64,000 nucleotides of DNA from Lepidodermella squamata (Eukaryota; Animalia; Gastrotricha). The DNA lies in assembly GCA_047495785.1 (NCBI GenBank), contig JBLDXI010000003.1:2666001-2730000 (forward strand), written 5' to 3'. Positions 7,189 to 64,000 of the stretch are shown one piece after another (position 1 is the first letter of the stretch; each line of letters starts with the position of its first letter). Under the pieces are notes generated by a model. That model ran no database searches. It was not told where the DNA came from and saw only the letters and a list, made by a program, of their open reading frames with translations. The translations under genes were made by a program, and so were the position numbers.

Positions 7189-9793
7189 TCAGGCTGTCGA
7201 TGAAACAACGCTCCAAGCATCGCCGTAGTTATCAGCCATATTCGTTGACCACTCAGCCCAGTAAGCCTCAATCTGGTCCTTCGGTCCAATTCCAGGGATA
7301 AGTCCACGATACGTCAAATCAATATCATCCGTATGGTTGTGCAACCGGTTGTAAGCGGCCTTGGAAACTTGAACTTTCATAGCTGTATAATAATTTGCAG
7401 ACGAAATCACTAAAACTATAAGATAGTGAAAAAATGTTTACGCAGGCTTGTCGAATGGACCAGTGAAGCCTCGGGAATCAAAGGGCCAACTAACAGCATC
7501 CGAGGAATTTGCAAATAAACCAGCTTGGCGGCGCATGCTCCGACGTGAATGCCAAATCGAACGTGAATGTCGCCTTCAATGTCTTCTGTTTCGTTATTGC
7601 TGATTTCGAAGATTTCCTTCAGTTCCAGGGCCAGTGAGACCATTTCAAGGACGTGGTTAGTAATAACGCGATGCTCGCCCAACCCATTTGCGAAAATCAT
7701 CCCTCCACCTTACAGATTTAGTCAAATTTTCATCGACGAATCTGAGTAACTCCAAATACCTGTAACTTCGATTTTAACGCATGATCGAGAATGAAGATTT
7801 TCCTCGATAACTTCGAACGTCTTATTGAGAATCGTCGAGAAAGTATCAGCATCGTACTCAGTTTGAAGAGCATCGATGTTGAAAATGTCCATAACGGCAA
7901 CGCAGGTATCTTCATGCAGCAAAACATATCACTTTTACATGAATCAAGGACTTGTTTTTACCTGAGAAGAACTTCGGGGACATTGATTGGCCCAGTTTAG
8001 CAGGCGTTGCTAGTTCATAGGGCAGGTAATCGTAGAGCAAAGTCAGGGCATCAGTTAGTTGATCGAGGTTCTTGTAGTAAGTTGTCACAACGTTCTGCAT
8101 GCGGCGCGTGGCAAGGATATGAAGAAAATACGTGATTACAACGAAAAATGCAGCGGTAGCATACATTCCCACGACTGTGAAAACAAGGATGTGATTTGTT
8201 GGTTGTGGTTTGGCTTACATCACTTACAGAACACGTCATTAGAAGGCCAGAGTCCGACATTTGCAGCTAGGGCTTCGTCAGATACTCGCCGCACTTCAGC
8301 TAGGACGTACAGTATGTTAGTTTCATGCCTAGCAGTTTTCTCCCCGAAGTCATTGCCGTCGATTCTGTCGAAAGCCTGCTGAAGGGCTATAGCTTGCAAT
8401 GTTTCAACTTCCTTGTTCGAGTCCAGCGAGGTCAAGTTGTCCACCTTCAGCGCAGTGAAGTCTGAAGTGATACCAGCAACTTTCTGTAGCTCTTGGTACT
8501 GGTTGTAAAACGCAAGCATTTTGCCGTAGACTCGATCATTTATAGCCACAGTTCGGTCTGAAAACAACGATTCGAAGCATCTGTAGGTTAAGCTTAAAGC
8601 AAACTCACTTTCTGAAGCAAGTTTCTTGCCGACGATTGAGTATTGCTTAAAACTCATCCACTGAAAGTAATAACGTAAATGATATAAAAGTGCGATTGGG
8701 CTTAGAGAACCATTTGAAAAACAGGCGTCAGCGCAAGAAACTCCTTGTAGCCGATGTAAGGCGGTGCATTGACAATCAAAATGCCTCCAACTGCAATGAG
8801 CTGCTCAATAATTGTCGAGTAGAACTGCAACACCTGCGCCTCTGAGGTATCAAAACATAAGCCGAGTTTACCGCGTTTCAGGTTATGTCTCTAACCTTCA
8901 GTTCCATTAACCGCCTTGCGCAACTCCCTCTGCCCCTTTACTGCCGTTCTAAGGGCGGCCAGGGAAGTTATGTTGACCTGCAGTTCTGTCGGGACCACAT
9001 CAAAATCGCTGCCTTGGGGCCACGAGTCGCTCCAGATGAGAAGCTGAATTGAGGATTGAGTTTCTTTTGCTGCAATGCTAACGCACTGTAACTTACGCCA
9101 TCGACGACTTTGAAGATTTCTCTCGACTTGAGCTGAAAGTTGTCGTAAGTGCCCGTATTGAATCTAGAAGACTTTTTAACGGCAAGCAAATAATTTTTGG
9201 GAAATTCACTCATAAGAGACGCCCATTTCATCTGCCAACGCCTGCACCATGTCGAACACTGTAGGAATGAAGATCAAAGTTCGAATTCCAATTCAAGCTC
9301 TAACGTATACTCACCAGAGTTTGCCAAAGTTCGCGTATCCTGGAAAACGGTCGAGCGGATAATATTGAGGTCCACATCATCTTACTGTAATAACTCACCG
9401 TGATTACTTCATCCATAGCATCTCTCGCGTTTGAAGCATCGATGTCAGAGTAAATTTGGACGAGAATACCAGCAGTGGCGATAATTGCGAAGGCTGAAAC
9501 CTGTAGATAGCACAGGGTTCAAAAGGAACCACACTCAATCGCATTTAACGCACCCATAACAGCATAACAGTACGGCCTGAGCTGTTTTTCAGCTGAGGAT
9601 CGAAACACGATGTGAGGCAACAACCGAAAAAGCTTTGATTGCCCAATCCCAACCGGCCGTCTTGACCCTTAAGTGTAACGCGAGTTCTACCGCTTGGCGA
9701 GGGCAGAGCCAGTGGGTCCATGTTGTCAGAGTCTGCGAAGCTCTCCGTGGGACTCGCCCGGCGACGCTGGTTAGAAGGGTTAGTACGTTGCAT
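7189..9793 (-). CDS. NIT-like 2-TM receptor with degenerate guanylate-cyclase-like domain, copy 1
   Basis: Exons encode FDPQLKNSSGRTVMLLW (pre-TM1), RTAVKGQRELRKAVNGT, TM2, LLYDYLP, VMDIFN, KIEVTGGGM, VRFGIHVG, PRMLLVGPLIPEASLVHS, MKVQVS and EAYWAEW. Confidence 0.85.
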
Positions 9794-10313
9794 GCTCTGA
9801 TTAAAACAAAAAATAAATGCCCTCCTTTGATCAGATACATGCTATATATATAGAGATGAACTCGGACGGTTAAATCACAGTCATGTGCTCGGGCCATCTT
9901 ATAATTAATTGAAGATACGTCATTTACGCACGTCATCGAAACTGATTGCCTTGGATGTACTCGACAGTAATTAAACAAGTAACAATTTTTAATCGCTGTA
10001 TTTTTCTGCAATATTATACTGCGGTCATAATCCGTTTTTAATCCGACTTCGCCTCTAAGAAGCAGCCGAAATATGTCAAATGAACCCAGTATACCTATCT
10101 GTGAAATGCACCTTACATGATTAAGCCGAATGTCGATGTTGCTTTCCCCTTTTTGCAAACATTGTTAAATCCTGTTACGGTTACTGTTAGTCATTTTCAT
10201 CTGGCAGAACTGGAAAATCGTAAAAAAATTCAATCACTAAGCTGCACGGGCACAACTGAAACGTACAAAGACGAAAATATTTATTTAAACCGTTGGGACA
10301 TAATTTTCCAAAA

Positions 10314-10565
10314 TCAGTTTTTGATTAATTGATAAATATCAACATTTCCTGATAAAGATGCTCTTGCGATCGTTCTAGCAAAGGCAGCGTCGTCGATAGT
10401 ATCGGCAGTAACGCTGTGACTAGTCAGTTTTCCGGTCGGTTTAGTAGGGACCTTGGAGATTGTCGTCGTGCTTTTTGAGTGCTTCATCGAAGATGTTCGA
10501 GTTGGAACAGCGTCATTCTTTTTGTAATGATACTCCGCAGAAACAGGCCGATTGGATTTGTCCAT
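10314..10565 (-). CDS. Possible small Ser/Thr/Lys-rich protein of unknown function (83 aa)
   Basis: ATG-initiated ORF with protein-like composition in the gap between copies 1 and 2. No recognisable domain. Confidence 0.3.
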   Translation of the reverse strand: MDKSNRPVSAEYHYKKNDAVPTRTSSMKHSKSTTTISKVPTKPTGKLTSHSVTADTIDDAAFARTIARASLSGNVDIYQLIKN

Positions 10566-11706: not shown

Positions 11707-14269
11707 TTATCCATTATTTGAAGTTGCCACACTTGATCTTTCATAGTCAAAGTTCGACTTGCCAGCCCAATCAGCCCAATAAGTTTCAATCATCTCATGG
11801 GCATTGATACCCGACATTTTCCCGCGATAGTTGAATTCAACATCATCCGTTTGGCTGTGGACACGGTTATGAACGGCCTTAGATATAAGTATTTTCATTG
11901 CTAAGAAACAAATTCCAAGTTGTGAGCAGTCTGAGTACATTCGATTGTTACTTACGCAGACAGGCCGAATGCACCAAAGCGACCTCTTGCGTTATGGCCC
12001 CAACGATAGCGAATCGAGGAACTTGAAGCTGGATGATTTTAGCTGCGCAAGGCCCAATATGAATACCAGTGCGAACGTAGATTTTGGCATCAGCATCCTC
12101 CGATTCATCGTTGGCAGTTTCAAGCAGCTCCTTTATCTCTAGAGAAGCGTGAACCATGGCTAGTGCGTGATTGATTATAAGATGTCTTTCCCCCAGGCCA
12201 GTGGCGTAAACGAAGGAGCAGCCTTAAAAACATCGGAAAGGCGTGCGAAATTGGTATCAAAAAGTTGTGAAAACCTGAAACTTCAACTTTAAAGCAAGAA
12301 TGTTTGTGAAGACAATCCTCGACCAATTCGTAAGTTTTACTGATAATCTCAGCAAACTTATCCGGATTAAGTTCAAGCTGCAGAGAATCAATGTTGTAAA
12401 CGTCCATTATACCCATGCATGTATCTGCGGATAAACAAAAAATAGGTAGCTCTAAGCAGAATGGTAATATCTTCACCTGAGAAGTATTTGATCGGCGTGT
12501 GCTGCCCCATGCGAATCACGTGAGCAAGCTCAAGAGGTATGTAATCGTAAAGTAGATTGAGCGCCTCAGTCAATTCGTCGAGGTTTTTGTAGAAACCGAT
12601 AATGGTATGCTCGAGTCTAATAGTTCCGATGATGTGCGAGACGAAGGACAACAAACCGAACAAAACCGCAATGATGAAAATAATGACAACTTAAGGAAAA
12701 TAAAGTTAAGGAACAAAGGGTAGTGAAAGGCTAGCTCATACAAAATAGGTCGTTATCTGGCCACAGCCCAACAGCTTCTTGCAGGGATTTGTCGCTGACA
12801 ATTCGAAGTTGCGTTAATACGTACTGCACATTGACATCATGCCTCAGCACTATTTCCTCGAAGGTAGCACCATCGATTATGTTGAAATCCCGGCCGTAGA
12901 CCAGAGTAATTTGTGATTCAACATCCTTATTTGAGTCAAGGGAGGTGAGGTTGTCTAGCTGAGCGACGGCAAAATCTGAAGTGAGGCCAGCGATGCTGAT
13001 GAATTCTTGATAAGCGAAGTAGTACGATAGCAGATTTGTGAAGACTGGGTCGTCAAATTGCATGGTCCGATCTATATATTTTGGCCTCAGCTTTTACTGA
13101 AATCATAGCTCAGAAATTCAAACTTACTCTCGTAGGCAAGTTTCCGCCCTACCGTCGCGAACTGCTTGAAATTAATCCACTAGTGAATAAGCATAAATCT
13201 GGCGAGGAGCAGAAGTTATTTAGCCTGGCATACCATTTGAAAAACGGGAGTCACAGCCAAAAAGTCATGGTATCCGTCGTATATTGGCGCCGCGAATATC
13301 AAGTAACCTCCGACAGTCGCGAATTGATCGATTATGGTCGAATAGAATTCGAGAACTTGCGGTTCTGCAACCGTGAAAAGCATGGGAAGTTATTCTTATG
13401 ATATTATTATGCTCACCGGAAGTTCCATTTACAGCTTTTCGAAGGTCTCGCTGTGCCTTCAATGCAGTCCTGAGAACGGCCGGGGATGTGATGTTGACTC
13501 TCAGATGGCTCGGAATAATATCCAGAATGGCTCCCGACGGCCAGGCCTCATTCCATAGTAATTTCTATTACATAAATCCGAAAACATTCTCGCATTTCTG
13601 ACAAGCAAAGGTTCCTCACTGCATCAACTTCCTTTATAGCTTCCTTGGATCTGTCCTGGTAAATGTCATATGGTCCAGAATTGTACCTGAGAGCAACATT
13701 ATTTATGCCGCGGATAATTTTCTAGAAAGAATGATTATACTGATAGGAAACAGCCAATTCGTCCGCGAGTAGTTCAACCATGTCAAAAACTGCATGATTC
13801 CACGAATTGATTTAAAACCAGTTGTTAGCTCAATTTTTACCTGCGTTTGACAGAGATCTCGTGTTCTATGAACATCAAATTATTCAGTTAAAAGTGATGG
13901 CCGTCAAAGAATTGTTACGCTAATAGTATCATCGAAGTCATTCCTTGCATTAGACAGGTCGATGTCAGAATAAATTTGGACAATTATGGCGGATGCAGCA
14001 ATTAAGGCAAGAATTACGACCTGTAATCGAAGAAATTAGACAGAAACGGTTCTACGAAATATTCGAACCCATATCAGCATGACGGCTCTGCCAGAACGAA
14101 GCTGGACCTGGGGATTGAACCAATAACCGCAGATACCTGCGAGGCCATTGTTGACTGAATTGGCGAATCTGACTGACTTGCCGTATTCTTTTGACTTAGA
14201 TCCAACTCCAAATGAATATTCAGAGCCATGATAGCTGTCTGTCCCGCTTGGTTGCTCGCGCTTGAGCAT
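11707..14269 (-). CDS. NIT-like 2-TM receptor with degenerate guanylate-cyclase-like domain, copy 2
   Basis: FNPQVQLRSGRAVMLIW, KAQRDLRKAVNGT, LLYDYIP, IMDVYN, KVEVSGCSF, VRTGIHIG, PRFAIVGAITQEVALVHS and ETYWADW. Most similar to copy 1. Confidence 0.85.
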
Positions 14270-14895: not shown

Positions 14896-17609
14896 TTAAG
14901 TGTGCATATTTTCAGATAACTGGTATGAACCAGTAGATTCAGATTGTACTTTCGATTTTTCAGAGATGAGGCTCTTTGTTTCATCGCCGTCGTCATCAGG
15001 CCTTTCCCAATCAGCCCAATAAGCTTTTATCTTGTGTCCATCTCTTATTCCATCAATTTCCCCGCGGGAAATGAACTCCACCTCGTCACTTGACTTGCGC
15101 AGGCGAGCTCGAACAGCATCAGAGACTTGAACCTTCATTGCTGAAAAATTAACACAAGATGTACAGCCATGTAAGAACTAGATATCATTCCCTTACGTAG
15201 GCAAGTCGAGTGAATGAGCGAAACTACTTGAACCGATTCGCCAACTACGGCAATGCGCGGAAACTGGAGATACGCAGCTCTCGCGTAACAGGTACCAACG
15301 TGAATTCCAAACCGCATCGATACGTCCTGCTCTATACCCTCAATAGAATCGTTTACTTCAGCCATTTTGTCCCGTAGCTCCAGCGCGATGAAAAGCATCT
15401 CAATGATATGCTGGGTCATGATATGATGCTCTCCGAATCCAGTTCCGATCATGAAGCATTCACCTTATAATACGCATAGTCATATAACTATATAGTAACA
15501 TATTCTCGAATCTACCTGTAACTTCGATTTTGAAGCAGCTATGCTTACGCAGGCAATCTTCAATAATCTCATAGGTTGTATACATGGTTTTGGCAAAGTC
15601 GCCGATGGTGGATTCGTTCATCAGAAAGGCGCAGTTCACATCAAATACCATTAAGCATGCATCTGAAATAGATAAAATCATGAGTGCCATCCTCGAGGAC
15701 AGAAATTCTCACCTGTGTGCTTGGTTACGGGTACATTCTCACTTACGCCTCTCGAGAGCAAATGCGGAAGGGATGCACGAATTTCAGCGGAATCTGGTAA
15801 ATAGTCGCGGATGAGGTCGAACGATTTCCTCAAAAGATCCAGGTTAGCGTTAAGATCGAGAAAAGTGTTATGTAGACGCTGAGTCGCGGCTACATGAACA
15901 GGAACCAGAGATAGGGCAAATATGACAGCAACGCAAATGAAAGCAAGAGCTAAAACATTTTCGTCTCGAGGCATACCGATGATTGAATATTTACCAAACT
16001 TACAAAATACGTCCACGTTTTTCCAGTGGCTTGCAGCATATTGCATAGCTTCGGCAGTTCGTCGGTTGAGTTGGCGCAGAAGCCAGTTCAAATTTTCATT
16101 TTGCTTGCTTGACGGCTCTGCTATCATTTCAGGCATAAGATTATCAAAATCTTGCTTTCCGACCTAATCAAAGAATTCGTGCTAATTTCTGATACACATA
16201 CAACATGATTACATATTGATTTTGTATTTTCTCAAGTTGTTGGTACCAATCTTGCTCCTCTGTTATGTTCCTGATCTGATCAGCTGTATATGGCGAGTCT
16301 AGCCGCGCTATCGCGATGAACTCAGAATATCGAATGTAATAATTAACGATTGAGGTGAAAACTGGGTCTCTGTAGCTGGACACCGTTCTGTCTGGTAGCG
16401 ATTGCAAGAAAAATGTGAACATGTTTCGATCAAAATGACAAATCGCCCTTACTTTCTTGCGCTAGTTTCGTCAAAACAACTGTGTATCTTTTCAAGTTGA
16501 CAATCTATGGACAGAAATGACATTAATATAGCGTAAAAATTATGGGTCTTAGCGTACGGCCTGAAAAACCCGACTTATGGCAAGCAACTCTGACCATCCA
16601 TCGAAGCGTTTTAAATTGACAGTTGCCGTACGAGCGACAAGAGCCAAGTTGTCGCCGATTTTAGCGTAAAAGTTCAAGACATCCGCCTCTGTGATTTCAA
16701 CTGAGGGTGAACAATTCGATTCTTATTATCGAAGTAAACCTGATGATCCATTCGGTGATTTTCTAGTATCTCGCTGTAACCTTAACGCCAAGCGAAGCGC
16801 TAGAGATGACGACATATTTCCACGCTCGTTCTCAGGTATGACAATCAAGTCCTCATCGGTGGGCCAGGTATCACTGAACGTCAGTTTCTTAAAAAAGAGT
16901 GCGAATAATTTGATCATTCAAGCGAAAGGAGGGGATTATACTGTATCGACAGCTCGCATTACGTCCTTGGCTTTTTCTTGAAATTCCTTTTCAAAAGCAA
17001 AAGGTTTTTTTGCGATTCACAAAGGTATTGAAGTCATACTTCATAGGGTCCGTTATTGTACCTGAAAAATTAAAATTAGCTATTTCTAGAAGACAGTATT
17101 TCACCCGACATACATGTAGAATGGTTCCGATTCCAAGGCCAGCAGCATCGAAACATCATTCCTGCATTTCGTAGGTTTGAGTCAGAACTCGAGAAATTAA
17201 AACATAATACACTTACATTTCTGCTATAAGCAAGCTGTTTTTCTGAATTAAATCAAATAATTAGGGATCAAGCGTTTTATGTGAGATCTCACCTTAATAG
17301 CTCCGCTGTAAGCCTGTCGCGCTTGTGCCAAGTCAACATCGGTGTATACTTGCACAACAATGCCAGCGATAGACAGAATCGTAAAGAATACAATCTTTAA
17401 TGTAGCAGAATTGCATTGTTGTCAAACGTAAGTTTCAAAAATTATACCAGAACCATGAACTCAATCCGTCCTCCTCGGCTTGAAACCTGCGGGGTGAAGA
17501 CGGATCTCCAGCATTGATAGTTTGCCATAGTTCCACTTAGTGACGCTGCATATTTATGAAGTACTGACGACGGCCGTTCGACGGAATTTGACGGAATAAC
17601 TGTAGCCAT
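14896..17609 (-). CDS. NIT-like 2-TM receptor with degenerate guanylate-cyclase-like domain, copy 3
   Basis: ATG at 17609 (MATVIPSNS...FTPQVSSRGGRIEF), SSSLALRLALRLQRDTRKSPNG, LIRDYLP, VFDVNC, KIEVTGECF, MRFGIHVG, PRIAVVGESVQVVSLIHS and an acidic tail. Confidence 0.85.
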
Positions 17610-20147: not shown

Positions 20148-22765
20148 TTATCTTGCCCGGAGCTCGATCAAAGAAGAAGCTACACTGATTCCATCATCAC
20201 TTTCATCTCCAAACACTTTGCTCCCAGCCCATTCGATCCAAAAAGTTTCAATGCTGTCATCGCCATTCTACGTAATAAAATTCAATATCAGGATGATTGA
20301 AAACTATATCGCACTCACGTTATTGCCCATGTCGACAAAACCACGGCGGAAAAATTTGAAATCGGTCTCGAACGATGCCAATCGTCGTTGAATGGCTGCA
20401 GTTACCAATATTCGATGCGGGAAACTCTTGGCATGAGCTATTGACGTTATTGGCAAAAGTTTTCCTATGATCATAACTCGTGGAAAATGCAGGTTCAGCA
20501 AGCAGGAATGGCACGGTCCGCAGTGCACGCCGAATCGAAGCTGAACTTCGATGTTATCTTCGCGCTCTTCATTCGTTTTGTCAGTCAGATCCCGCAGCTC
20601 CAAGCAAGCCAGGCAAATTTCCAAAACATGATCCTGAAAAATATTCAATAATGTTTGTTCATGGCCTCATGGTTTTTTTACCAGAGCGTGATGCTCCCCG
20701 ACGCCAGAGCCAATTGTTACAAAGCTACCGAAAACGTTCATCTTGAAGCAGCTGAATTTCGGCAGAGTTGTTTCGACGTTGAAGAAAAACTCCTCCAGTG
20801 TCTCTGCCAACTTAGGCGCATCCAACTGCTCTCTCAGGATCTCAAAATTTGAGACATCAAAAATCGCGGCAGCCGAGTCTTGAGTTTAAATATATTAGAG
20901 AAATCCAAGGCAAGGTGTAATTTCACCCACCATTGTGGCGCTTTACAGGCATGCATGCCCCTGTTTTAGCCATATTCACGAATTTCGCTGGCATGTAGTC
21001 ATAAAGCAAGTAGAGGCACTAGAAAACAGGTCATATCTTTTCGGAAAATTCACGATTCCACTTACTCCCGTGAGAACATCAAGACTTTCGTGTAAGTTGA
21101 CTACTTGCGCCTGGATTCTGATCGTTCCGAGCACATGGGAGACAAGAGCGATCAGCGTTATGCCTCCAGCAATGCCCATGAATATGACGGCTGAATGATC
21201 AAATCTCAGCGGGAGGAAAGAAGTGGCTTGGAAACCTTACATAACAAGTCATCCTTCGCCCAAGCGCCCGCAGCTAACGTCATTTCGATGACGATACGCT
21301 TTCGCATTTCACTAACGATCCAAGCTATGTTCTTGTCGTGGGCGTCAGCGGCAGCTGCAAAAATATCACCATCGACTTGATCGAAAAAACCCGTTAAAAC
21401 CTTGATTTCACAAACATTTCAAACAGCCAATATATCTAACTCTGATTTCTCACCGAAGTGTACAAGAGTTCTATGTTCCTGTAGGAATCTAGTCCTGTTA
21501 GATTCGTGATTTTCTCATTGCCGTAGGAAGAGTACAATGACGCGAGCGATGAGAATTGTATGTAACGTTGATAGTAGAGAAGTAGCGAGCGGAAAAGTGG
21601 GCTCCCATCGACAGTTACAGTCCGATCTAACTCAATTATGCGAATACATTAAAATATATTGCTTTGGGTGGCCAACTTTCTTTTGCCAGTCGCTTCCCCA
21701 CCAGGGCGTACTGTTTGAAGTTCATCCACTGATGTTGGGTTAAAAGAAGCTAAAACAACAGTTTCATGGATGAAAAAACTAACGCTTTGAAAGGAGGGAG
21801 TCAATCCAAAGAAATCTTGCCAGCCATCAAAGCGAGATGATTTAGCTATAACGGTTCTTGCCACCAGTGTCAAATAATCGATAATTTGTGAGTAGAATGC
21901 CATTACTGCCGCCTCTGAAAAAAGCAGTGTCATCAGCGAAAATAAATATATGGCAACCCATTCTTAATACCATCAGTCCCATTCGCAGCTCGACGAGTAT
22001 CTCGTTGGGCTTTCACGGCAGCTTTCAGCACCAGTGGTGATGTTATGTTTATCCTGTTCGCAGTAGCGATAACCGTCAAATCGTCGGCATTTGGCCATTT
22101 ATTGTTGAATATCAGTTTCTTCCCGATGTAAAAATGTGACCCATGGGCAAAATATTAACTTCTGCGAACTTACTGAATCAGTATTTTGCATTGAGATTTT
22201 TGCCTTCAAAAATGTGTTATCGCTTCAATTATAAAAAGGCTGCTTTTACCTGAGCAAGGAAGTCTTCGTATGGCCCTGTATTAAATCTAAAGGAAAATAA
22301 TATGCACAAAGGTGTGTAAGCAGGTCGAGAAACTACTCGTAGGCCGGTTCCATTTCCTCGGCAAGCACTTGAATGATGTCGAATAATTCCATAACCAAAT
22401 CCATTCGGCCCTGTGATAAACTTGATATTGAATTAAAATTGATTGGTTTATAAACACACAGAAATGTCTTTGGCCATCATTTCTCTCTCCTCGGCCATTT
22501 GAATGTCAGTTATGATCTGCACAGCTATGGACGCAGTGAAAATGGACGCCATAAATATTATCTGCGAATAATCAAAAGTTATTCTTGGCGTAATTTCGAG
22601 AGAAACGTATCATACCCATGTTAATTGCAAAGCCCTGCCGACTTTTGTTTTAGCCTGAGGGTTGAATAACAAGCTACATAACTCCTTGCTAGCTTCCATA
22701 AAGTAAGCTTTTTTCTCAACTACACTTTCTGAGTAAAGCGACATTTCCCTTGAACGAATTTGCAT
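20148..22765 (-). CDS. NIT-like 2-TM receptor with degenerate guanylate-cyclase-like domain, copy 4 (most divergent)
   Basis: FNPQAKTKVGRALQLTW, KAQRDTRRAANGT, IFDVSN, KMNVFGSFV, LRFGVHCG, PRVMIIGKLLPITSIAHA and ETFWIEW. Stop at 20148-20150. Start uncertain (22744, 22765 or 22834). Confidence 0.8.
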
Positions 22766-23073: not shown

Positions 23074-23904
<831 letters not shown>

Positions 23905-24792: not shown

Positions 24793-27532
24793 TCAAGTAT
24801 GCATATCTTCAGATAACTGGTAAGATCCTGTAGAATCCGAAACTACTTTGGATTTCTCAGAGATCAGGCTCTTCGTCTCATCGTCATCGTCGTCAGGCCT
24901 ATCCCAGTCAGCCCAATAAGTTTTGATTTTTTTACCCTTATTAATGCCATCGATTTCTCCACGGGAGATGAAATCCAGCTCGTCAGTTGACCTGCGTAGA
25001 CGCGAGCGGATAGCATCAGAAACTTGAACTTTCATAGCTGAAATCAGATTTGAAATTTTATGAAATTTATAAAATTATCCCACTCTCATACGTAAGCTGG
25101 TTGAATGCAAGAGGGAAACAATTTGAACCGACTCGCCAACTACATAAATGCGTGGAAACTGGAGATACGCAGCTCTCGCGTAACAGGTACCAACGTGAAT
25201 TCCGAATCGCATCGACACGTCGTGTTCAACACCGTCGAGATTATTGTTAACTTCGATCATTTTATCACGCAGTTCAAGAGCAATGAACAGCATCTCGATT
25301 ATATGCTGAGTCATGATATGATGCTCTCCGAATCCAGTTCCAATCATGAAACAATCACCTGATATGAGGAAAAGATCAAGCAGGGAAGAATGGTAGATAT
25401 GATACCTACCTGTAATGTCAATTTTAAAGCAGCTATGCTTACGAAGACAATCTTCAATGATCTCATAGGTTGTATACATGGTTTTGGCAAAATCGTCGAT
25501 GCTGGATTCGTTCATTAATGTGGCACAGTTTACGTCGAATATCATCAAACAAGCATCTGAATTATAAAACTTTGCTAACTAAAAAGAAGATCTCAGTGAA
25601 ATATCGCACCAGGGTGTTTCGTAACAGGTAGAGTATCCCCCTCTCTTACGCCTCGTGAAAGCAGATATGGTAAAGAGGCTTGCATTTCAGCGGAGTTTGG
25701 CAGATAGTCGTGGATGAGATCAAAAGCTTTCCTCAAAAGTTCCAGATTAGCCTGAAGGTCGAGAATAGTTTTTTGCAATCGTAAGGTCCCGATAATATGC
25801 ACAGGAATTAGGGATACAGCAACCAATGCAGCAGCGCATATAAATGCAAGACCTGAAACAATTTCAAGTTTTTACCATTGACCAATGTTAGGTAATGGGT
25901 AATATTCCGAACTTACAAAATACTTCAAGGTCACTCCAATGACCTGCTGCGTATTCCATAGCTTTTGTAGTTCGTTGGCGGAGTTGCTTCAAAAGCCAGT
26001 TCAAACTTTGATCTTGCTTTTCAGCCGGCTCCGTTACCATTTCGGGAAAAAGATTCTCAAAGTCTTGCTTTCCAACCTGCGAAATAAAATCTATGGTCCC
26101 GGAACTTTTTTGAGCCAAATAAATTTTACATATTGACGTTCTATTCTCTCAAGCTGCTGATACCAATCTTGATCCTCTGTTATATTCCTGACTTGGTCAG
26201 CTGTATACGGCGAGTCCAATCGCGCTATCGCGATGAACTCGGTATAGCGAATGTAATAATTCACAATTGACGTGAAAACTGGGTCTCTGTAGCTAGATAC
26301 AGTCCTGTCTAATAGAAAATAGAAAATGCAACTCAAAACCAGGCTTATTTCAAGTGAAAACTGATTTCTTACTTTCTCGAGCTAGTTTCGTCAAAACAAC
26401 GGTGTATCGTTTCAAATTCACAATCTATGCGGGACGGCATTCCAGTTAGGAAAATATACTGCATTCCTTTGACTTACGGCCTGAAAAACCCGACTAATAG
26501 CTAGTAATTCTGCCCATCCAGCGAACCGTTTCATGTTGATAGTTGCCGTGCGAGCAATGATAGCTAAGTTGTCTCCGATTTTGGAATAAAAATTCAGAAT
26601 ATCCGCCTCTGAATATGTAAGGCAAAATTAAAAGAAAAATTTCCGCTTATTATAGACATCAACCTAACGATCCATTCTGTGCTTTCCGAGTATCCCGCTG
26701 CGTCCTGACAGCCAAACGAAGCGCCAGGGCTGAAGAGATGTTCTGCCTCTCCTTCTCAGGTATAACCACTAAGTCTTCTACATTAGGCCAAATATCGCTG
26801 AACGTCAGTTTCTGGAAAACAAGTGTTAGCCGATGTAATTGATACAGAATGGCATAGGGCTTACTGTATCAACAGCTCGCATTACATCCTTAGCTTTTTC
26901 TTGAAATTCCTTTCTCACAACAAGGTAACATTTCAAACTTTGCAATACGTTTAAGAATCATACTTCATAAGGTCCTGCGTTATACCTAGAAACATGACAT
27001 TAGGTATTTCGCAGATCAATAAAGCCACCTCTCTTTACATGTAGAATGGTTCCATTTCCAAAGCCAGGAGCATTGCGACATCATTCCTTATATAGAGTTT
27101 TCAAGTTCACGATATACTATATATAGCGGAAAATTCTTACATTTCCGCAGTGAGCAGCTTGGTTCTCTGAACGGTTAAAATATTAGGCATTAACTTTTTG
27201 TACAATTATGCATTAGCCTTGCCTGAATTATCCTACTATCCGCTTCCCTCTCGTTCGCCAAGTCTACGTCGGTATAAACTTGAACAAGAATTCCAGCGAT
27301 TGACACGATCGAGAAGAATATTATCTGGAAAATAGACCAAAATCACTAAATTTCCAAGATTAGTAAGACACAATACCAAAATCAAGAGCTCGATGCTTCC
27401 TCCTCTGTTTGACACCTGTGGATTCAAGACGTCGCGCCAGATGTTCCAACAACGGCCACCGAACTTGTCTAAATGTTTGCTGAGAGCAAACTTGGGCCTT
27501 TTTGCTGAGGTAAAAGGAAAAACAGAAGTCAT
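24793..27532 (-). CDS. NIT-like 2-TM receptor with degenerate guanylate-cyclase-like domain, copy 5
   Basis: Close paralog of copy 3 (DRTVSSYRDPVFTSIVNYYIRY is identical). IFDVNC, KIDITGDCF, MRFGIHVG and PRIYVVGESVQIVSLLHS. Confidence 0.85.
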
Positions 27533-40019: not shown

Positions 40020-40241
40020 TTAAAAACAAAGCGACTTCTTCTACTGATCTGAATAATGAATAATTTATTGTCCAACAATTCAATTTGCATGTCCACGCAT
40101 TAATTAATCAGGTTAGCCTCTTTTAAGTTAAGATGGTAATTAATCAAACAGAGTAATTATCCTCTTTGCTTTTACTTGAATCAAATTGATAGCCACGCAT
40201 CACTAAATATAGTCAAGCCTTGAATCACTAAATATAGGACC

Positions 40242-41492: not shown

Positions 41493-42220
41493 AGCTCCAA
41501 TGGCCGGGTCAAAACTTCAGCAGTACCTAGGACGTCTAGCTATTTGTGACAATGTTACGTCGAAATTTCTGTCTCATAGAATATGTATTTTTGAAGCGAT
41601 AAAGTTAATTAAAACAGTGAAAATCAAACAGCATAGATTGGATTTGCGTCATTCTACACGAGATGTTTGCCATCAAGCATCGCTTGTTATCGATTGAAAG
41701 ACAGAGCGATAGAGTTATTTCTTCCAATCAGAAATACTTTCTTTTTCGGACAATCCCTCTATGTCATCTTTGTTGTTTCAAAGCGAATTCAGACTTTGCT
41801 TATCATTAAAAGCCGATACCTATTTCAATATATGTAGCGCTTGTTGAATATTTTCGAGAAACGTCTTGTTCTCCATATATTCAAGCTAATCATGGTTTTC
41901 CAACCTAGTGAAGCTTTCACAAATCAAGAAAACATTGATTCACAGAGTTATTTAAAAGAGCAAGGAAAATTGTGGGCCCCCTTAAAAAAATGGTTGATCT
42001 CAAAAGACCCGTGAGCTTCTATTACTCCTCTATTACATGGTGAACACGATATATTTATTGCCAAATCAAAAGGTTTCAGGGGTAGATTGTTTTCTTTGAT
42101 GAGTGACACACCAAGAGCAGCGCATATGAGTGGGGAGTGGCGAGTTCATAATAAATAATAAAGATTGGCTATTTACGATCTCATCTAATTTTTCTGTCTT
42201 TGTCCCTTCAAACCGCAGCG

Positions 42221-45355: not shown

Positions 45356-48102
45356 TTACGTGTGCATGTCTTCGGACAGTTGGAAAGATGCCGTTGATTC
45401 GGATGAGATCTTTGTCTTTGCGGAAATAAGACTTTTGATCTCGTCATCGTCATCGTCCGGAACTTCCCAGTCGGCCCAGTATGCACGAATCTTCTTACCT
45501 TCTGTGATTCCATCGACTTCGCCACGGAATGTAAATTCGACTTCTTCAATCTTTTTACGTAAACGATTGCGAACAGAATCAGAGACCTGAATTTTCATAG
45601 CTAAAAGATTCAAAATTTGGTATACAATTCGGAAGGAAAGAATATCTCTCACGTAAGCATGTTGAATGGATAATTGAAGTAATTTGCAAGGCCTCCCCGC
45701 CAACGGCCAGGCGTGGGAACTGGAGATAGGCTGCCCGAGAAAAGCAAGTTCCGACATGAATTCCAAATCGAAGAGATACGTCAAGCTCGATGCCGTCCGA
45801 TGTCTTATTCAATTCCGCCATTTTGTCACGCATTTCAAGGGCAATAAAAATCTGGGGAATAAAGTTATCCACATTTGAAAGATATGTCAACCGAGTCAGA
45901 CCATTTCTGCAATGTGTTGCTGAGTCATTCGAGGTTCTCCGAATCCAGTTCCAATCAGGAAAGACCCGCCCGTGATTTCAATCTTAACACAACTGTGCTT
46001 TCTCATGCAGTCTTCAAAGAGCTCGTAGGTTGTGTAAAGAGTTTGGGCGAACTCCTCAAGGTTCGAATCACTTATCAGGCTCCCTAAATTGTTGATGTCA
46101 ATGATCATGAGACATGCATCTGTACAAGGAAAAATTGAGAGAAAACGGTGGAATTTTTCCTTAAAAGACCTTGATGGCTTTGCATTTGGGGCACATCGAT
46201 CGATCTGGTTAGGAGAGCTTTTGCTTCATCCCCCTTCCCATTAGGGAGATAACCATAAATGAGATCAAAGGCTTTTGTTAAGGTGTCTAAGTTGCTTTGC
46301 AAATCCAGGGTTGTGTTGTAGAGGCGATACGTTCCGATGATGTGGACAGGAATCGTTAGTAGGACGACAGCAGCGGAGATACATAGTAAAGCCAAAGCTT
46401 TTAAGAAGGAGTTGGACAACATTAATAGCTAGGATTAAATCTTACAGAAAATCTCGTTGCTAGTCCATCGTCCAGCAGTAAATTCAATTGATTTTTCCAC
46501 GCGGTGTCTTAACTGTGATAACACCCAATTCAAGTCCTGATCTTGCTTTCTTGCCGGCTCTTGAACCATTTCAGGTTCCAAGTTCGCAAAATCCAATTTG
46601 GCAACCTAATATCTGAAAAAATGAAATTTCGCCAGGAAAACTGAAAGTATTACATAGGTATTCTGTAGGCGCTCCAACATTCGATAAGGATCCTGATCTT
46701 CAGTGATGTTTTGCATCTTCTCGAAGGAGAATGGCGAGTCCAGCTTTGCTGTAGCTATGAACTCAGAGTACCTAGTGTAGTACAGCACAACGCTTCGATA
46801 TACCGGATCGCTGAAATCCGTAATCGTTCGATCTAAATAGGGTTTGACTTGAAATCAAGGATTCTACGTTCAAAGAAGGGAACTCACTGTCTTCCGCTAT
46901 TTTGGACAGCACAAGGGCATATCTCTTCAAATTGATTATCTGAGGAAGAGTCGAAAGGAAAGTTGTAGAGAAGGTACTCATAAGGATTTACCGCTTGGAA
47001 AACTCGAGTTGTAGATAGGAACTCGCCCCAGCCTGGAAATCGCTTAGCATCGACAGTAGCAGTGCGGGCTATGATAGCAAGATTGTCGCCAACAGTTGAA
47101 TAGAAATTGATAACTTCGGCCTCTGTTTAACATTTCGAATTAGGTGGATTCCGAGAGGGGAATAATGTATTACCAGAAGACCCGTTAGGCGACTTTCTTT
47201 TGTCTCGTTGTAGCCTCAGAGCCGAACGAAGTGCGAGAGTCGATGAGATATTCTGACGCTGGCTTGACGGGATTACCTCCAAATCAGTTGGAGACGGCCA
47301 TATGTCGCTGAAAGTTAATTTCTGTTTAAGAAAATTGTCTTATAACGCAATTGTTATAGTCAAATTTGACAGTACCGTATCAACCGCTCGCATGACATCC
47401 TTGGCTTTTTCCTGGAACATCTGTAACCGTAAGAAAATGAAGTACATCAGATTATGATTGATTATTGATTGGCAACTTACTTCATATGGACCTGTGTTGT
47501 AGCTGGAGGAAATAAGAGCTGTTATCACAAATAAGGTTGTGAATCAAGCTGAAAGTTACGTGTAAAAAGGTTCAGCCTCCAATGCGAGAAGCATTGCTAC
47601 GTCCATCCTAACAATAGAGGTAAGACTAGTTTATCCCACCAAAATCAAAGTGATTCTTCTTACAGTTCAGATGTCAAATATTTAACATGCTGTGAAAGGA
47701 AAACATTTGAAAATCTTGAGTTGGATAGTCCGGAGTCCGGAACTTACGTGTAAAGTCTTGCTAGCTTCTTCCCTTTCTTTTGCCAGGTCAGCATCCGTAT
47801 AAATTTGTACTCCTATTCCAGCGACCGATAAGATCACAAAAAACGCAATCTGAAAATAATATCAAATTTGAGAATAGTTAGTTTTTTGGTCGAAGTAAGA
47901 ATGAAATCACCGCCGTGACTAGTGTATTTGTGCCCAGAGTTGTTGTAACTTGAGGTCGCAAGATCTTCAAACCCACGGCGCTGATTTTGCTGATGAGAGA
48001 CGGCCTCTTATACCAAATTGAGGATGGTTTCCGTGAAACTTCAGTCGCTTCTGATTTCGGCAACTCATTGTTAACAGCAATCGCAGGAGTTACTGCGGCC
48101 AT
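45356..48102 (-). CDS. NIT-like 2-TM receptor with degenerate guanylate-cyclase-like domain, copy 9
   Basis: LRPQVTTTLGTNTLVTA, FQEKAKDVMRAVDT, LIYGYLP, IIDINN, KIEITGGSF, LRFGIHVG and PRLAVGGEALQITSIIHS. Confidence 0.85.
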
Positions 48103-51268: not shown

Positions 51269-51364
51269 CAATTTTCGAAAAAGCGTGTTTTTGTTGCTTG
51301 TTTTTTTGTAATAATAAAAATAAAAATTCCTCCTTAATTTGTTCTGCAATTTATTTTTTTAGCG

Positions 51365-53101: not shown

Positions 53102-53228
53102 CTCCTATTCGGCTTATGCCTAGCGCTCACCAGGCTGACCATAGGCAGGTGAACAAATAAGAATAAGATGCATTAGAGTGATGAGCTTTGCACATGACTG
53201 AAATTTATTCCATTGTTTTGTAATAAAG

Positions 53229-54584: not shown

Positions 54585-54622
54585 TTTTTGGTGAAAGTTT
54601 CAAGAAATAAAGGCGCGATGTA

Positions 54623-57217
54623 TTAATGCATCTTTTCCGAGAGTTGAAACGATTCAGTTGAAGCTGTTCCAACTGACGAAGCTTTTCCTGAAAGCAGACC
54701 GATCTGCTCGTCGTCTTCATCTGTCAAATCCCACTCTGCCCAATAAGCTCGGATAGGCCGTTCATTTGGCCCGGGTATATCGCCACGAATGACAAATTCG
54801 ATTTCATCGCTTTTCTTGCGCATGGCGTTGCGAACTGCACCGGAAACCTGAACCTTCATCGCTGCAAAAAGGGACTGTTAGATTACATAATGATTTTCAG
54901 ATTTCAGATCTTACGCATGCTGGTTGCATTTATCAGTGACGCAATTAGCAGAAGGTCTCCGGTCAGAGCGATTCGGGGAAATTGAAGGTTTACCAGCCGA
55001 GAATGGCACTGCCCAACATGGATGCCGAATCTCAGCATAGCATCCACATCGTTCGTGCTTTCTTCATTGATTCTTTTAAAGAAGTCTCGAAACTCAAGAG
55101 CAGTGTAAACCTTCGAAATAGTTGTAAATAATGATTCAGTCTAAGATATACTAACAAACCATATCAAGCACAGGGCTTCGCAAAAGATGGTGCTCTCCAA
55201 GGCCCGCGCCAATCATCATCGAGCTTCCTGTAACGTCGATTTTGAAGCAGCTGTGTTTCCTCAGAGCTTCCTCCAGGTGCTCATAAGTCTTTTGTAAAAT
55301 CACGCTCAATTCATCCGCTTGCAGGTCTGCTACCAGATTTCCAATGTTCCAAATGTCAATGGCTATGACACATACCTCTGAAGTTTGAGAAATATATTGG
55401 AAAATCAATCCATTTATCAATTCGAACTATTAACCTGGGCAGTGGATGACTGGTAACCGATCTTCCACTCCAGACATCAGCTTCGGTATGTCGTTGGCCA
55501 TTTCTCTCGTGTCGGGGATGTAATCGTAAATCAGGCTAAATGCTTCTTCAAGCAATTCGAGATTATCCTGCAGAGCGTTGATCGTAGTTCCGAGTCGAAT
55601 CGTGCATATTATGTGCAGAGGGAAAGCAATGAAAGTGATCGCTATCGAAATCGCAAGCATAACAACAGCTGATTGAAAGACATTTTAATAGAGGATTCAG
55701 ATTGAAATTTCCGAAAATTACAGAAGATTTCTAGCTGCGACCATGCACCAGAAAACTTGGTGACTTCAGCTCTGATTTGTTTCCGCATTTGATTCGTGAT
55801 CCAAACCAAGCTAGCATCCAGTGGTATGGCGACATCATCAACCATTTCGCGCGATAGTGAAGCGAAATTCTGAACCTCAACCTTGAAAAATGGGAGAACT
55901 TCGAAATATAATCATTCATATGGGCATTACATAGTTTTTCTGGATCTTGATAGCATTTCCATGGTTGTCCTGATTTTCGGTGACATTGTTTACTTGAATT
56001 GCGGCGTAAGGCGATGAGAAAACGCTTATCTTCAACCATTCTTCGTACTTGATGAAATAGTTGTGCAGATTTTTATACACCGGGTCACTGTAATTAGCGA
56101 CGGTCCTGTCTGAAAAAAGTTCAAGATAAAATAACTCAGATTGAGAAGCCAGCTCGTACTTTCTTCGGCCAATTTTCCGACGATGAAGCTCCAAGTCTTG
56201 AGATTCAATCTCTGTAAGAAAAAAACTCAAGTGATAATATAACTGTTAGCATTTTGGAGCAAACTGAGTTCATGATGCGTGTCATTGAGAATAGATCACC
56301 CCAACCAGGAAAACTATCCGTTTGAATCATGATACGACCAGGCAATGACTGCATGTTATTTATGATGCCATCGTAGAAAGCAATCACTGCGCTTTCTGTG
56401 ATAGAAAATATTTTAGGGCTCTTAAAACTCGCGTGATGTTTTCAATACCTGTAGTCCCATTCGGAGCTTTCCGCGTGTCTCGCTGAGCTCTCAATGCGGC
56501 TCTTAGGTTGGATGGCGAAGAAACATTAGGCCTATTACCTTCACTCAATCCAATCAAGTTAATAGGCCTTGGCCAGACATCGCTGTAAATCAGTTTCTAC
56601 TTCAAAATAATGAATTATTCGGTCGTTAAAACATGTTTGCATACTCACCGTATCTACAGCTTTAATCGCGTCTCTAGATTTTTCTTGAAAGACCTATAGA
56701 GTATTTGATTTTTTGTATGATATTTTGCTACGGAAAGCTAAACATTATACTTCGTATGATCCAGTATTGTAGCGATAGAATATATCTAATTCTCCAGAGA
56801 GCAGAGATAGAACATCAGCCCTGTATTGAGTTTAAAATCAACGCCTTGCACCAGGAAAACGTTAGTCAACTCACAGCTCTATGATGACATGGAAAGCGAA
56901 CTGCGGGGAAAATTTGAATAAAAACCCGGGGGAGAAGAATCAAGCCGACTTACATTAACTTGGGATGTTAGATTCGACCGGATGGTTGTGAAGTCTGCCT
57001 CGGTGTAAACTTGTACTGTAATGCCGGCCAAGCATAATATCGCCAGAAACGAAATCTGAAGGATAGAGAATTCAAACAAATTGTGAAAAATTGCCTGCTC
57101 TGTTACGGAGAAAAAGAACACTGCTCGGCCCGAAGTCGATGTCAAATCTAAAAATGTAGTTGCGATTGGTTGGTGATGGTCGCTTGGTGTGATCTTCGAT
57201 TTCGAAAGAAAATGCAT
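54623..57217 (-). CDS. NIT-like 2-TM receptor with degenerate guanylate-cyclase-like domain, copy 10
   Basis: TSTSGRAVFFF, LAILCLAGITVQVYTEAD (TM1), RAQRDTRKAPNGT, LIYDYIP, AIDIWN, KIDVTGSSM, LRFGIHVG and PRIALTGDLLLIASLINA. Confidence 0.85.
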
Positions 57218-63015: not shown

Positions 63016-63179
63016 CGCAAATAATTGAACATTTTACTTGATATACTTGACATTATTGCACTCTAATAAGTACATGAATATTACGTTAGTTGATACAATT
63101 TTTCAAACTAACAGCATTCGTGGATGAGAAATGATAGTAAGATAACTTGATAATCGCGCTCTCCGTCTTTAGATTGCTC

Positions 63180-64000
63180 TCAATGCATGTCTTCCGATAA
63201 CTGGAAAGATCCAGTTGAATCCGATGTGACCTTTGATTTCTCCGAGATGAGACTCTTAATTTCGTCATCATCGTCATCCGGTATCTCCCAATCAGCCCAG
63301 TAGGCGCGAATAGGTTTGTCCTCGGTGATTCCGTCGACTTCGCCCCGCGACGTGAACTCGATTTCTTCAACCTTCTTGCGTAAAAGATTTCGCACAGTGT
63401 CAGAAACCTGAATTTTCATTGCTGAAATGGTACAAATGTTAATACTGTTTTTAATTATTTTAGCAAGCTAATTACGTAAGCATGTCGAGTGGATTATTGA
63501 GACGACTTGAACCGCCGAACCAATTGCGACGAATCTCGGGAATTGCAGGTAGGCCGCTCGGGCATGGCATGTACCGACGTGAATGCCGAATCGCATGGAC
63601 ACATCCTCCTCGACTCCCTCAAGGCTGTCGTTCAATTCCTTTATTTTATCCCTTAATTCCAGAGCAATGAAAACCTGATGACAAGAAATTGATAGGGATA
63701 TCCATAGGGAGTTATAACTTACCATCTCGGCAATGTGTTGATTCATAATATGATGCTCGCCGAAACCAGTCCCAATCATGATGCAGCTCCCTGAGCAAAA
63801 CGGCAGTGAAACGATGAATACGGAGACTATGAAATTACCTGTAACTTCAATTTTGAGACAGCTATGTTTTCGAAGGCAGTCTTCAATCATTTCATAAGCC
63901 GTGTACATTGTTCGGGCGAAATCTTCCAAACTCAGGTCGTTCATCAAGCTACCAACATTGCTTACATCAAATATCATCAAACAAGCATCTTAAATGAAAA
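63180..64000 (-). CDS. NIT-like 2-TM receptor with degenerate guanylate-cyclase-like domain, copy 11 (only the cyclase exons are in the window)
   Basis: IFDVSN, KIEVTGSCI, MRFGIHVG, PRFVAIGSAVQVVSIIHS and an acidic tail. Closest to copy 8. Confidence 0.85.

Follow-up and report, generated by a model that had tools for sequence, protein, structure and literature searches.

An old, maintained array of far-diverged NIT guanylyl cyclase paralogs, probably pseudo-cyclases, in Lepidodermella squamata

In the gastrotrich Lepidodermella squamata, a stretch of 64,000 nucleotides (hereafter the window) carries eleven paralogous genes for two-TM proteins with a class III cyclase fold. We consider it probable that they belong to a lineage-specific, diverged branch of the NIT-domain guanylyl cyclases (NIT-GCs) made up of ligand-sensing pseudo-cyclases or regulatory partners of guanylyl cyclases (GCs), and that the genes were duplicated anciently and have all been kept by selection. 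That catalytic residues have been lost while selection has stayed strong suggests that the proteins probably sense ligands without the usual cGMP synthesis.

Results

Spliced models were produced for all copies with a purpose-written protein-to-genome aligner, validated on a hand-built model of one paralog (g7). They bear out the eleven minus-strand paralogs proposed in an earlier note made from the sequence alone, and the gene ends agree with the coordinates given there. All eleven genes have open reading frames, spread over 11-16 exons with GT..AG introns of ~50 nt; in the neighbouring gene, two introns with RNA support are 50 and 52 nt long, which fits this size. The search with PF00211 that the earlier note had suggested, run as part of a Pfam search of the six-frame genome translation, detected ten of the eleven genes with scores of 25-73 bits; the remaining one, g8, fell below threshold yet could be aligned throughout.

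Numbered by position in the window, and all on the minus strand, the genes are g1 (7189..9793; 13 exons, 652 aa; PF00211 44 bits), g2 (11707..14269; 13 exons, 642 aa; 27.6 bits), g3 (14896..17609; 16 exons, 648 aa), g4 (20304..22765; 14 exons, 598 aa; 46 bits), g5 (24793..27532; 15 exons, 644 aa), g6 (28286..31100; 12 exons, 743 aa; 72 bits), g7 (37066..40019; 11 exons, 785 aa with a poly-Ser/basic tail; 63 bits), g8 (42221..44941; 15 exons, 652 aa), g9 (45356..48102; 15 exons, 664 aa), g10 (54623..57217; 14 exons, 624 aa) and the 3' part of g11 (63180..64000; cyclase domain and tail). The last continues past the window end and, when joined to the next 4 kb, forms a complete 651-aa gene whose other end lies at window+2138. 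The C-terminal end of g4 is uncertain, a further exon being possible to ~20148, where the first reading had placed the end, and g7, whose predicted splice junctions include 39651/39599 and 38196/38141, may contain an extra in-frame intron of 51 nt at 37366-37416. The array is not contiguous: two minus-strand Cys-loop channel genes and several plus-strand genes are interleaved with it. Its transcription is weakly indicated by low-depth contigs of one probable RNA run (X1), which lie over exons of g7 and g8.

The subfamilies proposed in the earlier note hold up in the spliced models. Identity is 49% between g1 and g2, which form one subfamily, 75% between g3 and g5, 67% between g6 and g7 and 88% between g8 and g11; among g3, g5, g8, g9 and g11 it is 59-74%, and g4 and g10 each stand apart at 30-48%.

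These duplicates are old, stably kept and under purifying selection. Synonymous sites are near saturation in the closest pairs (dS ~0.9-1.3), dN/dS is 0.163 for g3/g5 and 0.075 for g8/g11, and constraint is strongest in the cyclase domain (0.02-0.09, with 0.085 and 0.023 in these two pairs). There are no pseudogenes among the 11. Birth-and-death, the mode of evolution that had been proposed for the array, is not supported, in particular not as a recent process, because the duplicates are old and constrained, with dN/dS of 0.08-0.16 in the closest pairs. It is also exceedingly improbable that the genes are decaying relics, pseudogenised once catalysis was lost. Such a history would suit the loss of catalytic residues in all copies (described below) and the weak evidence for transcription, but the eleven frames are open over 11-16 exons with intact GT..AG sites, dN/dS is 0.075-0.16 at near-saturated synonymous sites, and relatives found on metagenome contigs have kept the same substitutions.

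Every copy follows the order that had been described for the array: TM1, a helical ectodomain, TM2, an LLY..LP helix and a class III cyclase fold. A short N-terminal tail precedes TM1, and the helix ends in LLYDYLP. The ectodomain comprises ~285 aa, is helical and has four N-glycosylation sequons at conserved positions. Only ~50 residues lie between TM2 and the cyclase domain, which leaves no space for a kinase-homology or H-NOX domain, in line with the absence of both from the first reading. In g6 (minus strand), TM1 is a hydrophobic stretch that spans an intron (30662..30782; aa 107-128). It is followed by the ectodomain, which we interpret below as a divergent NIT domain and which contains the 4 conserved N-x-S/T sequons (29387..30661, exons only; aa 129-414), by TM2 (29260..29386; aa 415-437), by a signalling helix (29173..29259; aa 438-466) and by the cyclase-homology domain (28612..29112; aa 487-653). 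The signalling helix ends in LLYDYVP, which in the alignment corresponds to LLYQMLP in canonical GCs, and a single exon (29327-28603) carries TM2, helix and cyclase domain.

By sequence, the cyclase domain finds its best PDB matches in GC-C and GC-A. When the g6 exon was modelled with AF2, the model could be matched to sGC alpha, GC-A and AC C1 with a probability of 1.00 and an rmsd of 2.8-3.7 A over ~140 residues. Catalytic residues were tabulated for 20 family members and 37 canonical GCs. The first metal Asp (Asp1) is kept in all 20 family members. The second (Asp2) is kept in 9 of 20 and, within the window, only in g5, g6 and g7; the other 8 of the 11 window genes have Gly, Ser or Cys in its place. 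None of the 20 keeps the transition-state Asn, which has been replaced by Gln, Pro or Leu. A single one keeps the transition-state Arg, which is absent from all window copies and has become Leu or Ile; g6 shows Asn to Gln and Arg to Leu, both visible in its alignment with GC-C and GC-A. All copies have also lost the KGKG Lys and the phosphate loop GFT. Retained residues include the RxGxHxG Arg (18/20), the FG-loop Gly (18/20), the Ser (15/20) and, in g6 and g7, the GC-type Cys. Two conserved residues are specific to the family, a new Asn (19/20) and a new His (18/20), the latter two positions after the lost Arg, and eleven further family loci show the same catalytic-residue pattern. The proposal that the catalytic centre has been rebuilt is upheld by the loss of Asn and Arg together with the conservation of the new Asn and His.

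A canonical site is impossible in homodimers and in heterodimers within the family because no member supplies the Asn together with the Arg. Judged by these residues, the array proteins are probably pseudo-cyclases. We regard it as unlikely that they are instead working guanylyl or other nucleotidyl cyclases in which Gln has taken over from the ribose-contacting Asn and the new His from the Arg, so that the array would consist of ordinary ligand-gated receptors producing cGMP. In favour of activity, the pocket is not decaying (Asp1, the RxGxHxG Arg, the new Asn and the new His are conserved in 20, 18, 19 and 18 of 20 members), the cyclase domain is the part under the strongest constraint (dN/dS 0.02-0.09), the conservative change of Asn to Gln preserves the amide group, and both metal Asp occur in g5, g6 and g7, joined by the GC-type Cys in g6 and g7. 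However, 8 of the 11 window genes lack Asp2, which is needed for two-metal catalysis, the GFT loop and KGKG Lys are absent, and the missing residues are not available in trans from any other member of the family. In class III cyclases, moreover, changing this Arg to Ala or Leu cuts activity by orders of magnitude, which likewise counts against active enzymes here.

By profile comparison, the array ectodomain is probably a very distant NIT domain. Using hhalign, a 20-member family ectodomain profile was matched to the NIT region of 23 animal NIT-GCs with 94% probability (E 1.3e-7, 245 columns); the match is collinear and nearly full-length, and reversed and block-shuffled controls gave 0.4-3.6% probability. 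A custom NIT HMM built from animal NIT-GCs also matches family members collinearly, with up to 36 bits for the C42 paralog, and E, W, R and Y residues that are invariant in the family fall at four of the most conserved NIT-GC positions. Identity between the family ectodomain and the NIT regions of NIT-GCs is only ~11-17%. Pfam NIT (PF08376), which the earlier note had recommended as a check, matched nothing in the window, whether exon by exon or on single exons, and NIT ancestry therefore rests on the profile-profile evidence and on a moderately supported tree node (see below). The sole PF08376 match genome-wide, at C38:520584, is spurious: when modelled, the locus encodes a coiled-coil protein and not a NIT-GC.

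ESM Atlas feature searches with two ectodomain exons returned sub-threshold noise only. The second half of the ectodomain, folded from a 122-aa exon of the metagenome homologue L012 with the family alignment, gave a helical model (pLDDT 73) that found no informative match, and no NIT structure, by Foldseek against the PDB or by Atlas shape search; the best weak structural row was the KinB helical sensor (TM 0.48). These null results, the missing PF08376 match and the ~11-17% identity are what could be expected if the ectodomain were a helical sensor of separate origin that had been fused to a divergent cyclase and had come to resemble NIT-GCs by convergence. We consider such an origin very unlikely, given the collinear, nearly full-length profile match whose controls fail, the coincidence of the invariant E, W, R and Y with the best-conserved NIT-GC columns, the 36 bits of the bridging paralog against the NIT-GC profile, and the independent position of NIT-GCs as sister in the cyclase tree.

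Arginines at the NIT bundle interface are conserved and thought to bind nitrate or nitrite (PMC7400543). The helix-1 'E-R' Arg occurs in 20 of 23 NIT-GCs but in no family member, while the Glu is kept (20/20); a second invariant NIT Arg (21 of 23 NIT-GCs) is kept in all 20 family members. The idea of a rebuilt ligand pocket is supported only in part, the first of these arginines being lost and the second retained. Because a signature Arg is lost, the array proteins need not have nitrate or nitrite as their ligand.

When 1.84 billion proteins were searched with the single g6 exon as query, 33 of the 150 nearest cyclases were NIT-GCs. The terminal exon of g7, used as query in a protein search, gave no match at E<=0.001, probably owing to the length window and the poly-Ser tail. 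In a cyclase-domain ML tree the family forms a clade (100/100) on a stem of 2.99 substitutions per site. Its weakly supported sister group in the careful ML tree is the nematode NIT-GCs of Mesorhabditis and Plectus (86/82), at a node that is not starred and with a very long stem; a quick tree did not settle the position of the family. Together with the ectodomain profile match and the shared E, W, R and Y, this tentative sister relationship supports the derivation from NIT-GCs that had been proposed from the layout.

Genome-wide there are ~32 family loci, of which the 11 in the window are the largest array, and two canonical NIT-GCs of the same genome, one of them at C20:1.54 Mb, have the catalytic set complete. 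Two long open frames with cyclase matches, C20:318978 and C32:2004956, proved to be unrelated adenylyl-cyclase-like genes rather than intron-poor family members. An intronless HSP70 from this genome has its best named matches, at 75-78% identity, scattered among molluscs, arthropods and tardigrades; the intron style and the sister NIT-GCs hint at ecdysozoan, possibly nematode-like, affinities. Beyond this genome the family was found only as fragments on metagenome contigs, where related genes have the same substitutions and also lie in tandem. A 480-aa ORF upstream of L012 is a Cys-rich cytosolic N-terminal extension and not an intronless ectodomain.

Discussion

The layout leads us to propose that each gene product would be a two-pass membrane protein with both termini inside (N-in, C-in), beginning with a variable cytosolic tail. 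A glycosylated, all-helical ectodomain, presumably descended from the NIT double helical-bundle sensor, would be followed by TM2, a signalling helix of ~30 aa ending in LLYDYLP, the cyclase-homology domain and an acidic C-terminal tail. Receptor GCs and NIT-GCs suggest by analogy that the proteins act as dimers, in which a small extracellular ligand would bind to the helical sensor and the signal would reach the cyclase-homology domain by way of TM2 and the helix. We would expect no cGMP from homodimers or from dimers among family members. The protein could be a ligand-sensing pseudo-cyclase with a nucleotide-binding or scaffolding output, or else a regulatory partner of catalytically complete GC subunits, which would resemble the dependence of the sGC alpha and AC C1 half-sites on a complementary partner. 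A tentative extension is that strong selection has turned the cyclase fold of some 30 (~30) receptor pseudo-cyclases into a non-canonical output module, with a conserved and remodelled pocket of Asp1, Arg, new Asn and new His. Such a module may be a nucleotide-binding switch, an obligate partner of an active GC or a catalyst of a different reaction.

NIT-GCs were not recognised until 2020. They are described from placozoans, with 12 in Trichoplax (Moroz et al. 2020, PMC7400543), and 15 are reported from Platynereis in the study of NIT-GC1/2 by Jokura et al., in which NIT-GC1 makes cGMP in an NO-dependent manner (bioRxiv 10.1101/2023.08.02.551600). Like the array proteins with their probable NIT ectodomain, they consist of a NIT-type helical ectodomain between two TMs, a short helix and a class III cyclase without a kinase-homology domain, and they form multi-gene, lineage-specific expansions. 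In published NIT-GCs the cyclase domain is described as 'highly conserved' (PMC7400543; bioRxiv 10.1101/2023.08.02.551600), whereas in the array the Asn/Arg pair is absent, Asp2 is mostly absent, the Pfam NIT model finds no match, helix 1 is without its 'ER' Arg and the stem amounts to ~3 substitutions per site. To speak of a new sensory receptor family, as the earlier note did, is nevertheless too strong; the array is better described as a far-diverged branch of a family already known (PMC7400543; bioRxiv 10.1101/2023.08.02.551600). As far as the account of Shu et al. 2003 cited in PMC7400543 goes, NasR (PDB 4AKK) and the bacterial NIT chemoreceptors and kinases likewise place a two-bundle helical sensor, periplasmic or extracellular, between two TMs and relay its signal by a helix to a cytoplasmic module. 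They have no direct sequence match to the array and are related to it only via animal NIT-GCs.

The catalytic centre invites comparison with sGC alpha1 and mammalian AC C1, which also lack the Asn/Arg pair and keep the metal Asp, like g5, g6 and g7; sGC alpha and AC C1 gave the best Foldseek chains for the g6 model. Their partners are known and supply Asn, Arg and Lys, whereas no member of the array family could do so, and 8 of the 11 copies are unfit even as an alpha/C1-type half because Asp2 is absent. The gcy genes of C. elegans, thought to be chemoreceptors, are tandem, lineage-expanded membrane cyclases. They resemble the array in this genomic arrangement, but their products have an ectodomain of the ANF-receptor type, cross the membrane with a single TM, carry a kinase-homology domain and keep the catalytic set intact.

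To our knowledge, only one NIT-GC has a tested function, the NO-dependent cGMP synthesis of the Platynereis protein, and we know of no characterised class III cyclase that does not need the residues lost here. This genome shows how far NIT-GCs can diverge, having a large, old and maintained family whose sensor can hardly still be recognised as NIT. Should the proteins prove truly non-catalytic, they would offer a clear-cut natural case of receptor pseudo-enzymes in cyclic-nucleotide signalling, with the canonical NIT-GCs of the same genome as built-in controls; if they are active, they would represent an alternative catalytic solution. A non-canonical output module, if that is what selection has made of the cyclase fold, would amount to a mode of signalling as yet undescribed among animal membrane cyclases. 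Whether or not the proteins are active, the array, with its interspersed Cys-loop channel genes, is a candidate chemosensory repertoire in a poorly sampled animal lineage.

Results

The array consists of intact genes with short introns

The window (contig C3, 2666001-2730000) belongs to a eukaryotic genome assembly of 121 Mb in 151 contigs; overall GC is ~41%. In contigs of X1, a probable RNA run that maps to the window, two splice junctions, spanning 50 and 52 nt, fall within the gene at 40168-41492 and read CT..AC on the plus strand, hence GT..AG on the minus strand, indicating that genes of the window contain very short canonical introns. A six-frame search with Pfam PF00211 detected cyclase domains (25-73 bits) in 10 of the 11 intervals that an earlier note had assigned to minus-strand paralogs (g1-g11, numbered by window position); in g6 and g7 the domain lies on a single exon (72 and 63 bits, respectively). 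A hand-built model of g7 contains 11 exons; its introns, 48-117 nt long, uniformly have GT..AG ends. A protein-to-genome spliced aligner written for the task reproduced this model exactly and was then run on the other copies. All eleven genes have open reading frames (598-785 aa, 11-16 exons), and their ATG and stop positions agree with the earlier coordinates except at the 3' end of g4, where the model stops at 20304. With the 4 kb beyond the window added, g11 is a complete gene of 651 aa. The identity matrix reproduced the proposed subfamilies: g1/g2 (49%), g3/g5 (75%), g8/g11 (88%, with g9 at 63-72%) and g6/g7 (67%), with g4 and g10 standing alone. The last exon of g7 includes a possible in-frame 51-nt intron (37366-37416, minus strand, GTA...CAG) where g6 also has an intron (28550-28602); if spliced, g7 would be 17 aa shorter than the model.

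Nei-Gojobori estimates for the closest pairs gave a dS of 0.97 for g3/g5 (dN/dS 0.16 overall, 0.16 in the ectodomain and 0.085 in the cyclase domain) and of 1.33 for g8/g11 (0.075, 0.068 and 0.023, respectively), while all other pairs were saturated. The duplicates are therefore old, and within the protein constraint is strongest in the degenerate cyclase domain. There are also no pseudogenes among the window copies. Both decay of the array and recent turnover of the birth-and-death kind, the mode of evolution inferred in the earlier note, are contradicted.

Genes of other kinds, on both strands, break up the array. Two minus-strand genes, at 18282-19544 and 40168-41492, encode Cys-loop ligand-gated ion channels (Pfam Neur_chan_LBD and Neur_chan_memb). 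On the plus strand, an intronless 767-aa ORF at 58441-60744 carries, as its sole Pfam domain, a periplasmic-binding-type ligand domain (ANF_receptor, 65 bits), and is possibly a further receptor gene within the cluster. Other plus-strand ORFs are cofilin/ADF-like (33664-34149, 46 bits) or, in two paralogous cases (53229-53960 and 61585-62295), weakly similar to STELLO glycosyltransferases; Pfam matched none of the large ORFs at 52-3314, 34936-36769 and 50639-53101. The X1 contigs are RNA-like, being spliced and very uneven. The channel gene at 40168-41492 is well covered and spliced in X1, at a depth of 11-38, compared with 0.5-10 over exons of g7 (37400-37999 and 38600-39199) and g8 (42200-42799); transcription of the array is weakly indicated.

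The ectodomain probably descends from the NIT domain

Alignment of the family (the diverged array genes and their relatives) gives the order along the protein as a variable N-terminal tail, TM1 (VLIFVITFSAILSVAGIGVQLY in g7), a segment of ~285 aa, TM2, a 29-aa helix ending in LLYDYLP and, ~20 aa further on, the cyclase domain. This layout leaves no space for a kinase-homology or H-NOX domain, in agreement with the earlier note, which saw neither. The middle segment has strongly conserved motifs (W-P; N-I-S/T-S..ALR.A.R.QRD.RK..NG-S/T; FYS; N-R-T-V; N-L/I-T). Four N-x-S/T sequons occupy conserved positions within it in all eleven proteins (0-5 in the rest of each), consistent with an extracellular or luminal ectodomain. 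Most copies have an acidic C-terminal tail with the terminal motif QLSE-D/K-MH(T). In subfamilies other than g6/g7 the conserved end following the acidic stretch is S-F/Y-QLSE-D/K-MH(T), a possible signal for sorting or docking. The 3' ends of g6 (28286-28400) and g7 (37066-37230), both on the minus strand, instead encode a long poly-Ser tract and then a basic tail, through an imperfect trinucleotide repeat.

The suggested NIT ancestry found no echo in Pfam, as PF08376 has no match in the window or on single exons, but it was recovered by profile-profile comparison. Using hhalign, the 20-member family profile aligned with a profile built from the NIT regions of 23 animal NIT-domain guanylyl cyclases (NIT-GCs) at 94% probability (E 1.3e-7, 245 of 285 columns), while the reversed template gave 0.4% and five block-shuffled templates 1.2-3.6%. 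As an HMM, the NIT-GC profile was collinear with the family over nearly the whole domain, scoring 36 bits (E 6e-12) for a paralog on contig C42, 21 for an environmental member and 5-16 for the window genes; the family ectodomain HMM weakly matched two NIT-GCs, one nemertean and one nematode. Among the nine NIT-GC columns with the highest conservation, four (E, W, R, Y) do not vary across the 20 members, and the Arg of the helix-1 'ER' has no counterpart. The ectodomain is contiguously encoded in no family member; the predicted model of its second half is helical (pLDDT 73), and structural comparison was uninformative. Taken together, NIT ancestry is well supported at the level of sequence profiles. 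The single six-frame PF08376 match in the genome (C38:520584-520829, 26.8 bits, just above cut-off) was rejected as a false positive, since the protein there is a coiled coil in which the motif KADRSDL recurs.

The cyclase domain keeps its fold and has lost canonical catalytic residues

In the AlphaFold2 prediction for the g6 exon the cyclase fold is intact, matching sGC alpha, GC-A and adenylyl cyclase C1 with a probability of 1.00 at 2.8-3.7 Å; the sequence aligns unambiguously with human GC-C and GC-A. Residues of 20 family members were compared with those of 37 canonical GCs, including two canonical GCs and two canonical NIT-GCs of the same genome. The first metal Asp is kept in 20/20, and the Arg of RxGxHxG and the Gly of the FG loop in 18/20 each. 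The second metal Asp survives in nine (within the window only in g5, g6 and g7, with Glu in g3), the transition-state Arg in one (Leu in 11, Ile in seven) and the transition-state Asn in none (Gln in eight, Pro in four, Lys in three, others in five); the GFT loop and KGKG Lys are lost, and the GC-type Cys remains in just three members, two of them g6 and g7. The catalytic centre has thus changed, as the earlier note had claimed, with a new Asn at the Gly of GFT (19/20) and a new His two residues past the lost Arg (18/20). The same pattern holds at eleven further loci, with Asn kept in two and Arg in one. Because no member has both together, no pairing of family members, whether homo- or heterodimeric, could form the canonical site.

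We infer that canonical cyclase activity has been lost, and the output of the receptors is probably non-catalytic or dependent on a partner. The conserved Gln and His, together with the very low dN/dS, would also fit a catalytic site that has been rebuilt and is active, which we consider less likely; the minor rival readings are less likely still.

Relatives and phylogenetic placement

An exhaustive phmmer search of 1.84 billion representative proteins with the g6 TM2-cyclase exon found no match better than 1e-23. The best five family-like matches, all from ENA metagenome assemblies, are fragments of 133-231 aa, 23-38% identical, with the same unusual motifs. The contigs of these matches contain complete multi-exon family genes, sometimes in tandem, adjoining animal genes. 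Three such loci from related animals, L012, L013 and L014 (ERZ23486787, ERZ27333047), carry the divergent family, with three or more cyclase-bearing genes inside a 12-kb stretch of L014 and, in L012 (2231-3673), a member with a 480-aa Cys-rich N-terminal extension. The remaining listed matches are generic cyclases (20-25% identity), with a Pfam NIT domain in 24 of the 58 scanned; using jackhmmer, 33 NIT-GCs were among the best 150 matches listed.

An ectodomain-exon search located ~32 family loci on ten contigs of the genome; beyond the window, six were modelled in full and the cyclase exons of eleven more inspected. Two neighbouring canonical NIT-GC genes (C20:1538000-1547999) have the complete catalytic set (FNDV..., ETVSDTYM, RYCLFGDTVNTASRMES, KGKG), making them candidate partners and natural positive controls for the divergent family. 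A separate tandem array (C1:1282562-1308813) gives at least nine canonical cyclase-domain matches (142-150 bits); since neither NIT-GC nor family ectodomain profiles match there, these genes are another kind of guanylyl cyclase.

A careful maximum-likelihood tree built from 102 cyclase domains recovered the family as a single clade (100/100), whose stem measures 2.99 substitutions/site and which falls within the metazoan GC clade (98/93). NIT-GCs from two nematodes, Mesorhabditis spiculigera and Plectus sambesii, form its sister pair (86/82); tardigrade and nematomorph GCs come next. A quick tree left the attachment unresolved, and the sister placement is therefore suggestive.

Discussion

The paralog array set out in the earlier note is confirmed, and its interpretation holds in part. 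NIT-GCs have been described in placozoans, cnidarians, lophotrochozoans, some ecdysozoans, echinoderms and hemichordates (PMC7400543; bioRxiv 10.1101/2023.08.02.551600), and full-text literature searches returned no report of relatives with a degenerate catalytic set. In Platynereis NIT-GC1, cGMP synthesis depends on an NO donor and requires the NIT domain (bioRxiv 10.1101/2023.08.02.551600). Alongside the observed architecture, topology markers, fold, residue losses and constraint, we propose that the receptor would, like receptor GCs and Platynereis NIT-GC1, sense ligand as a dimer by way of its NIT-derived bundle and signalling helix. The earlier note put forward a candidate new family; the array is instead a variant of a known receptor type that has diverged far and become catalytically degenerate, and its main point of interest is the conserved pseudo-cyclase module.
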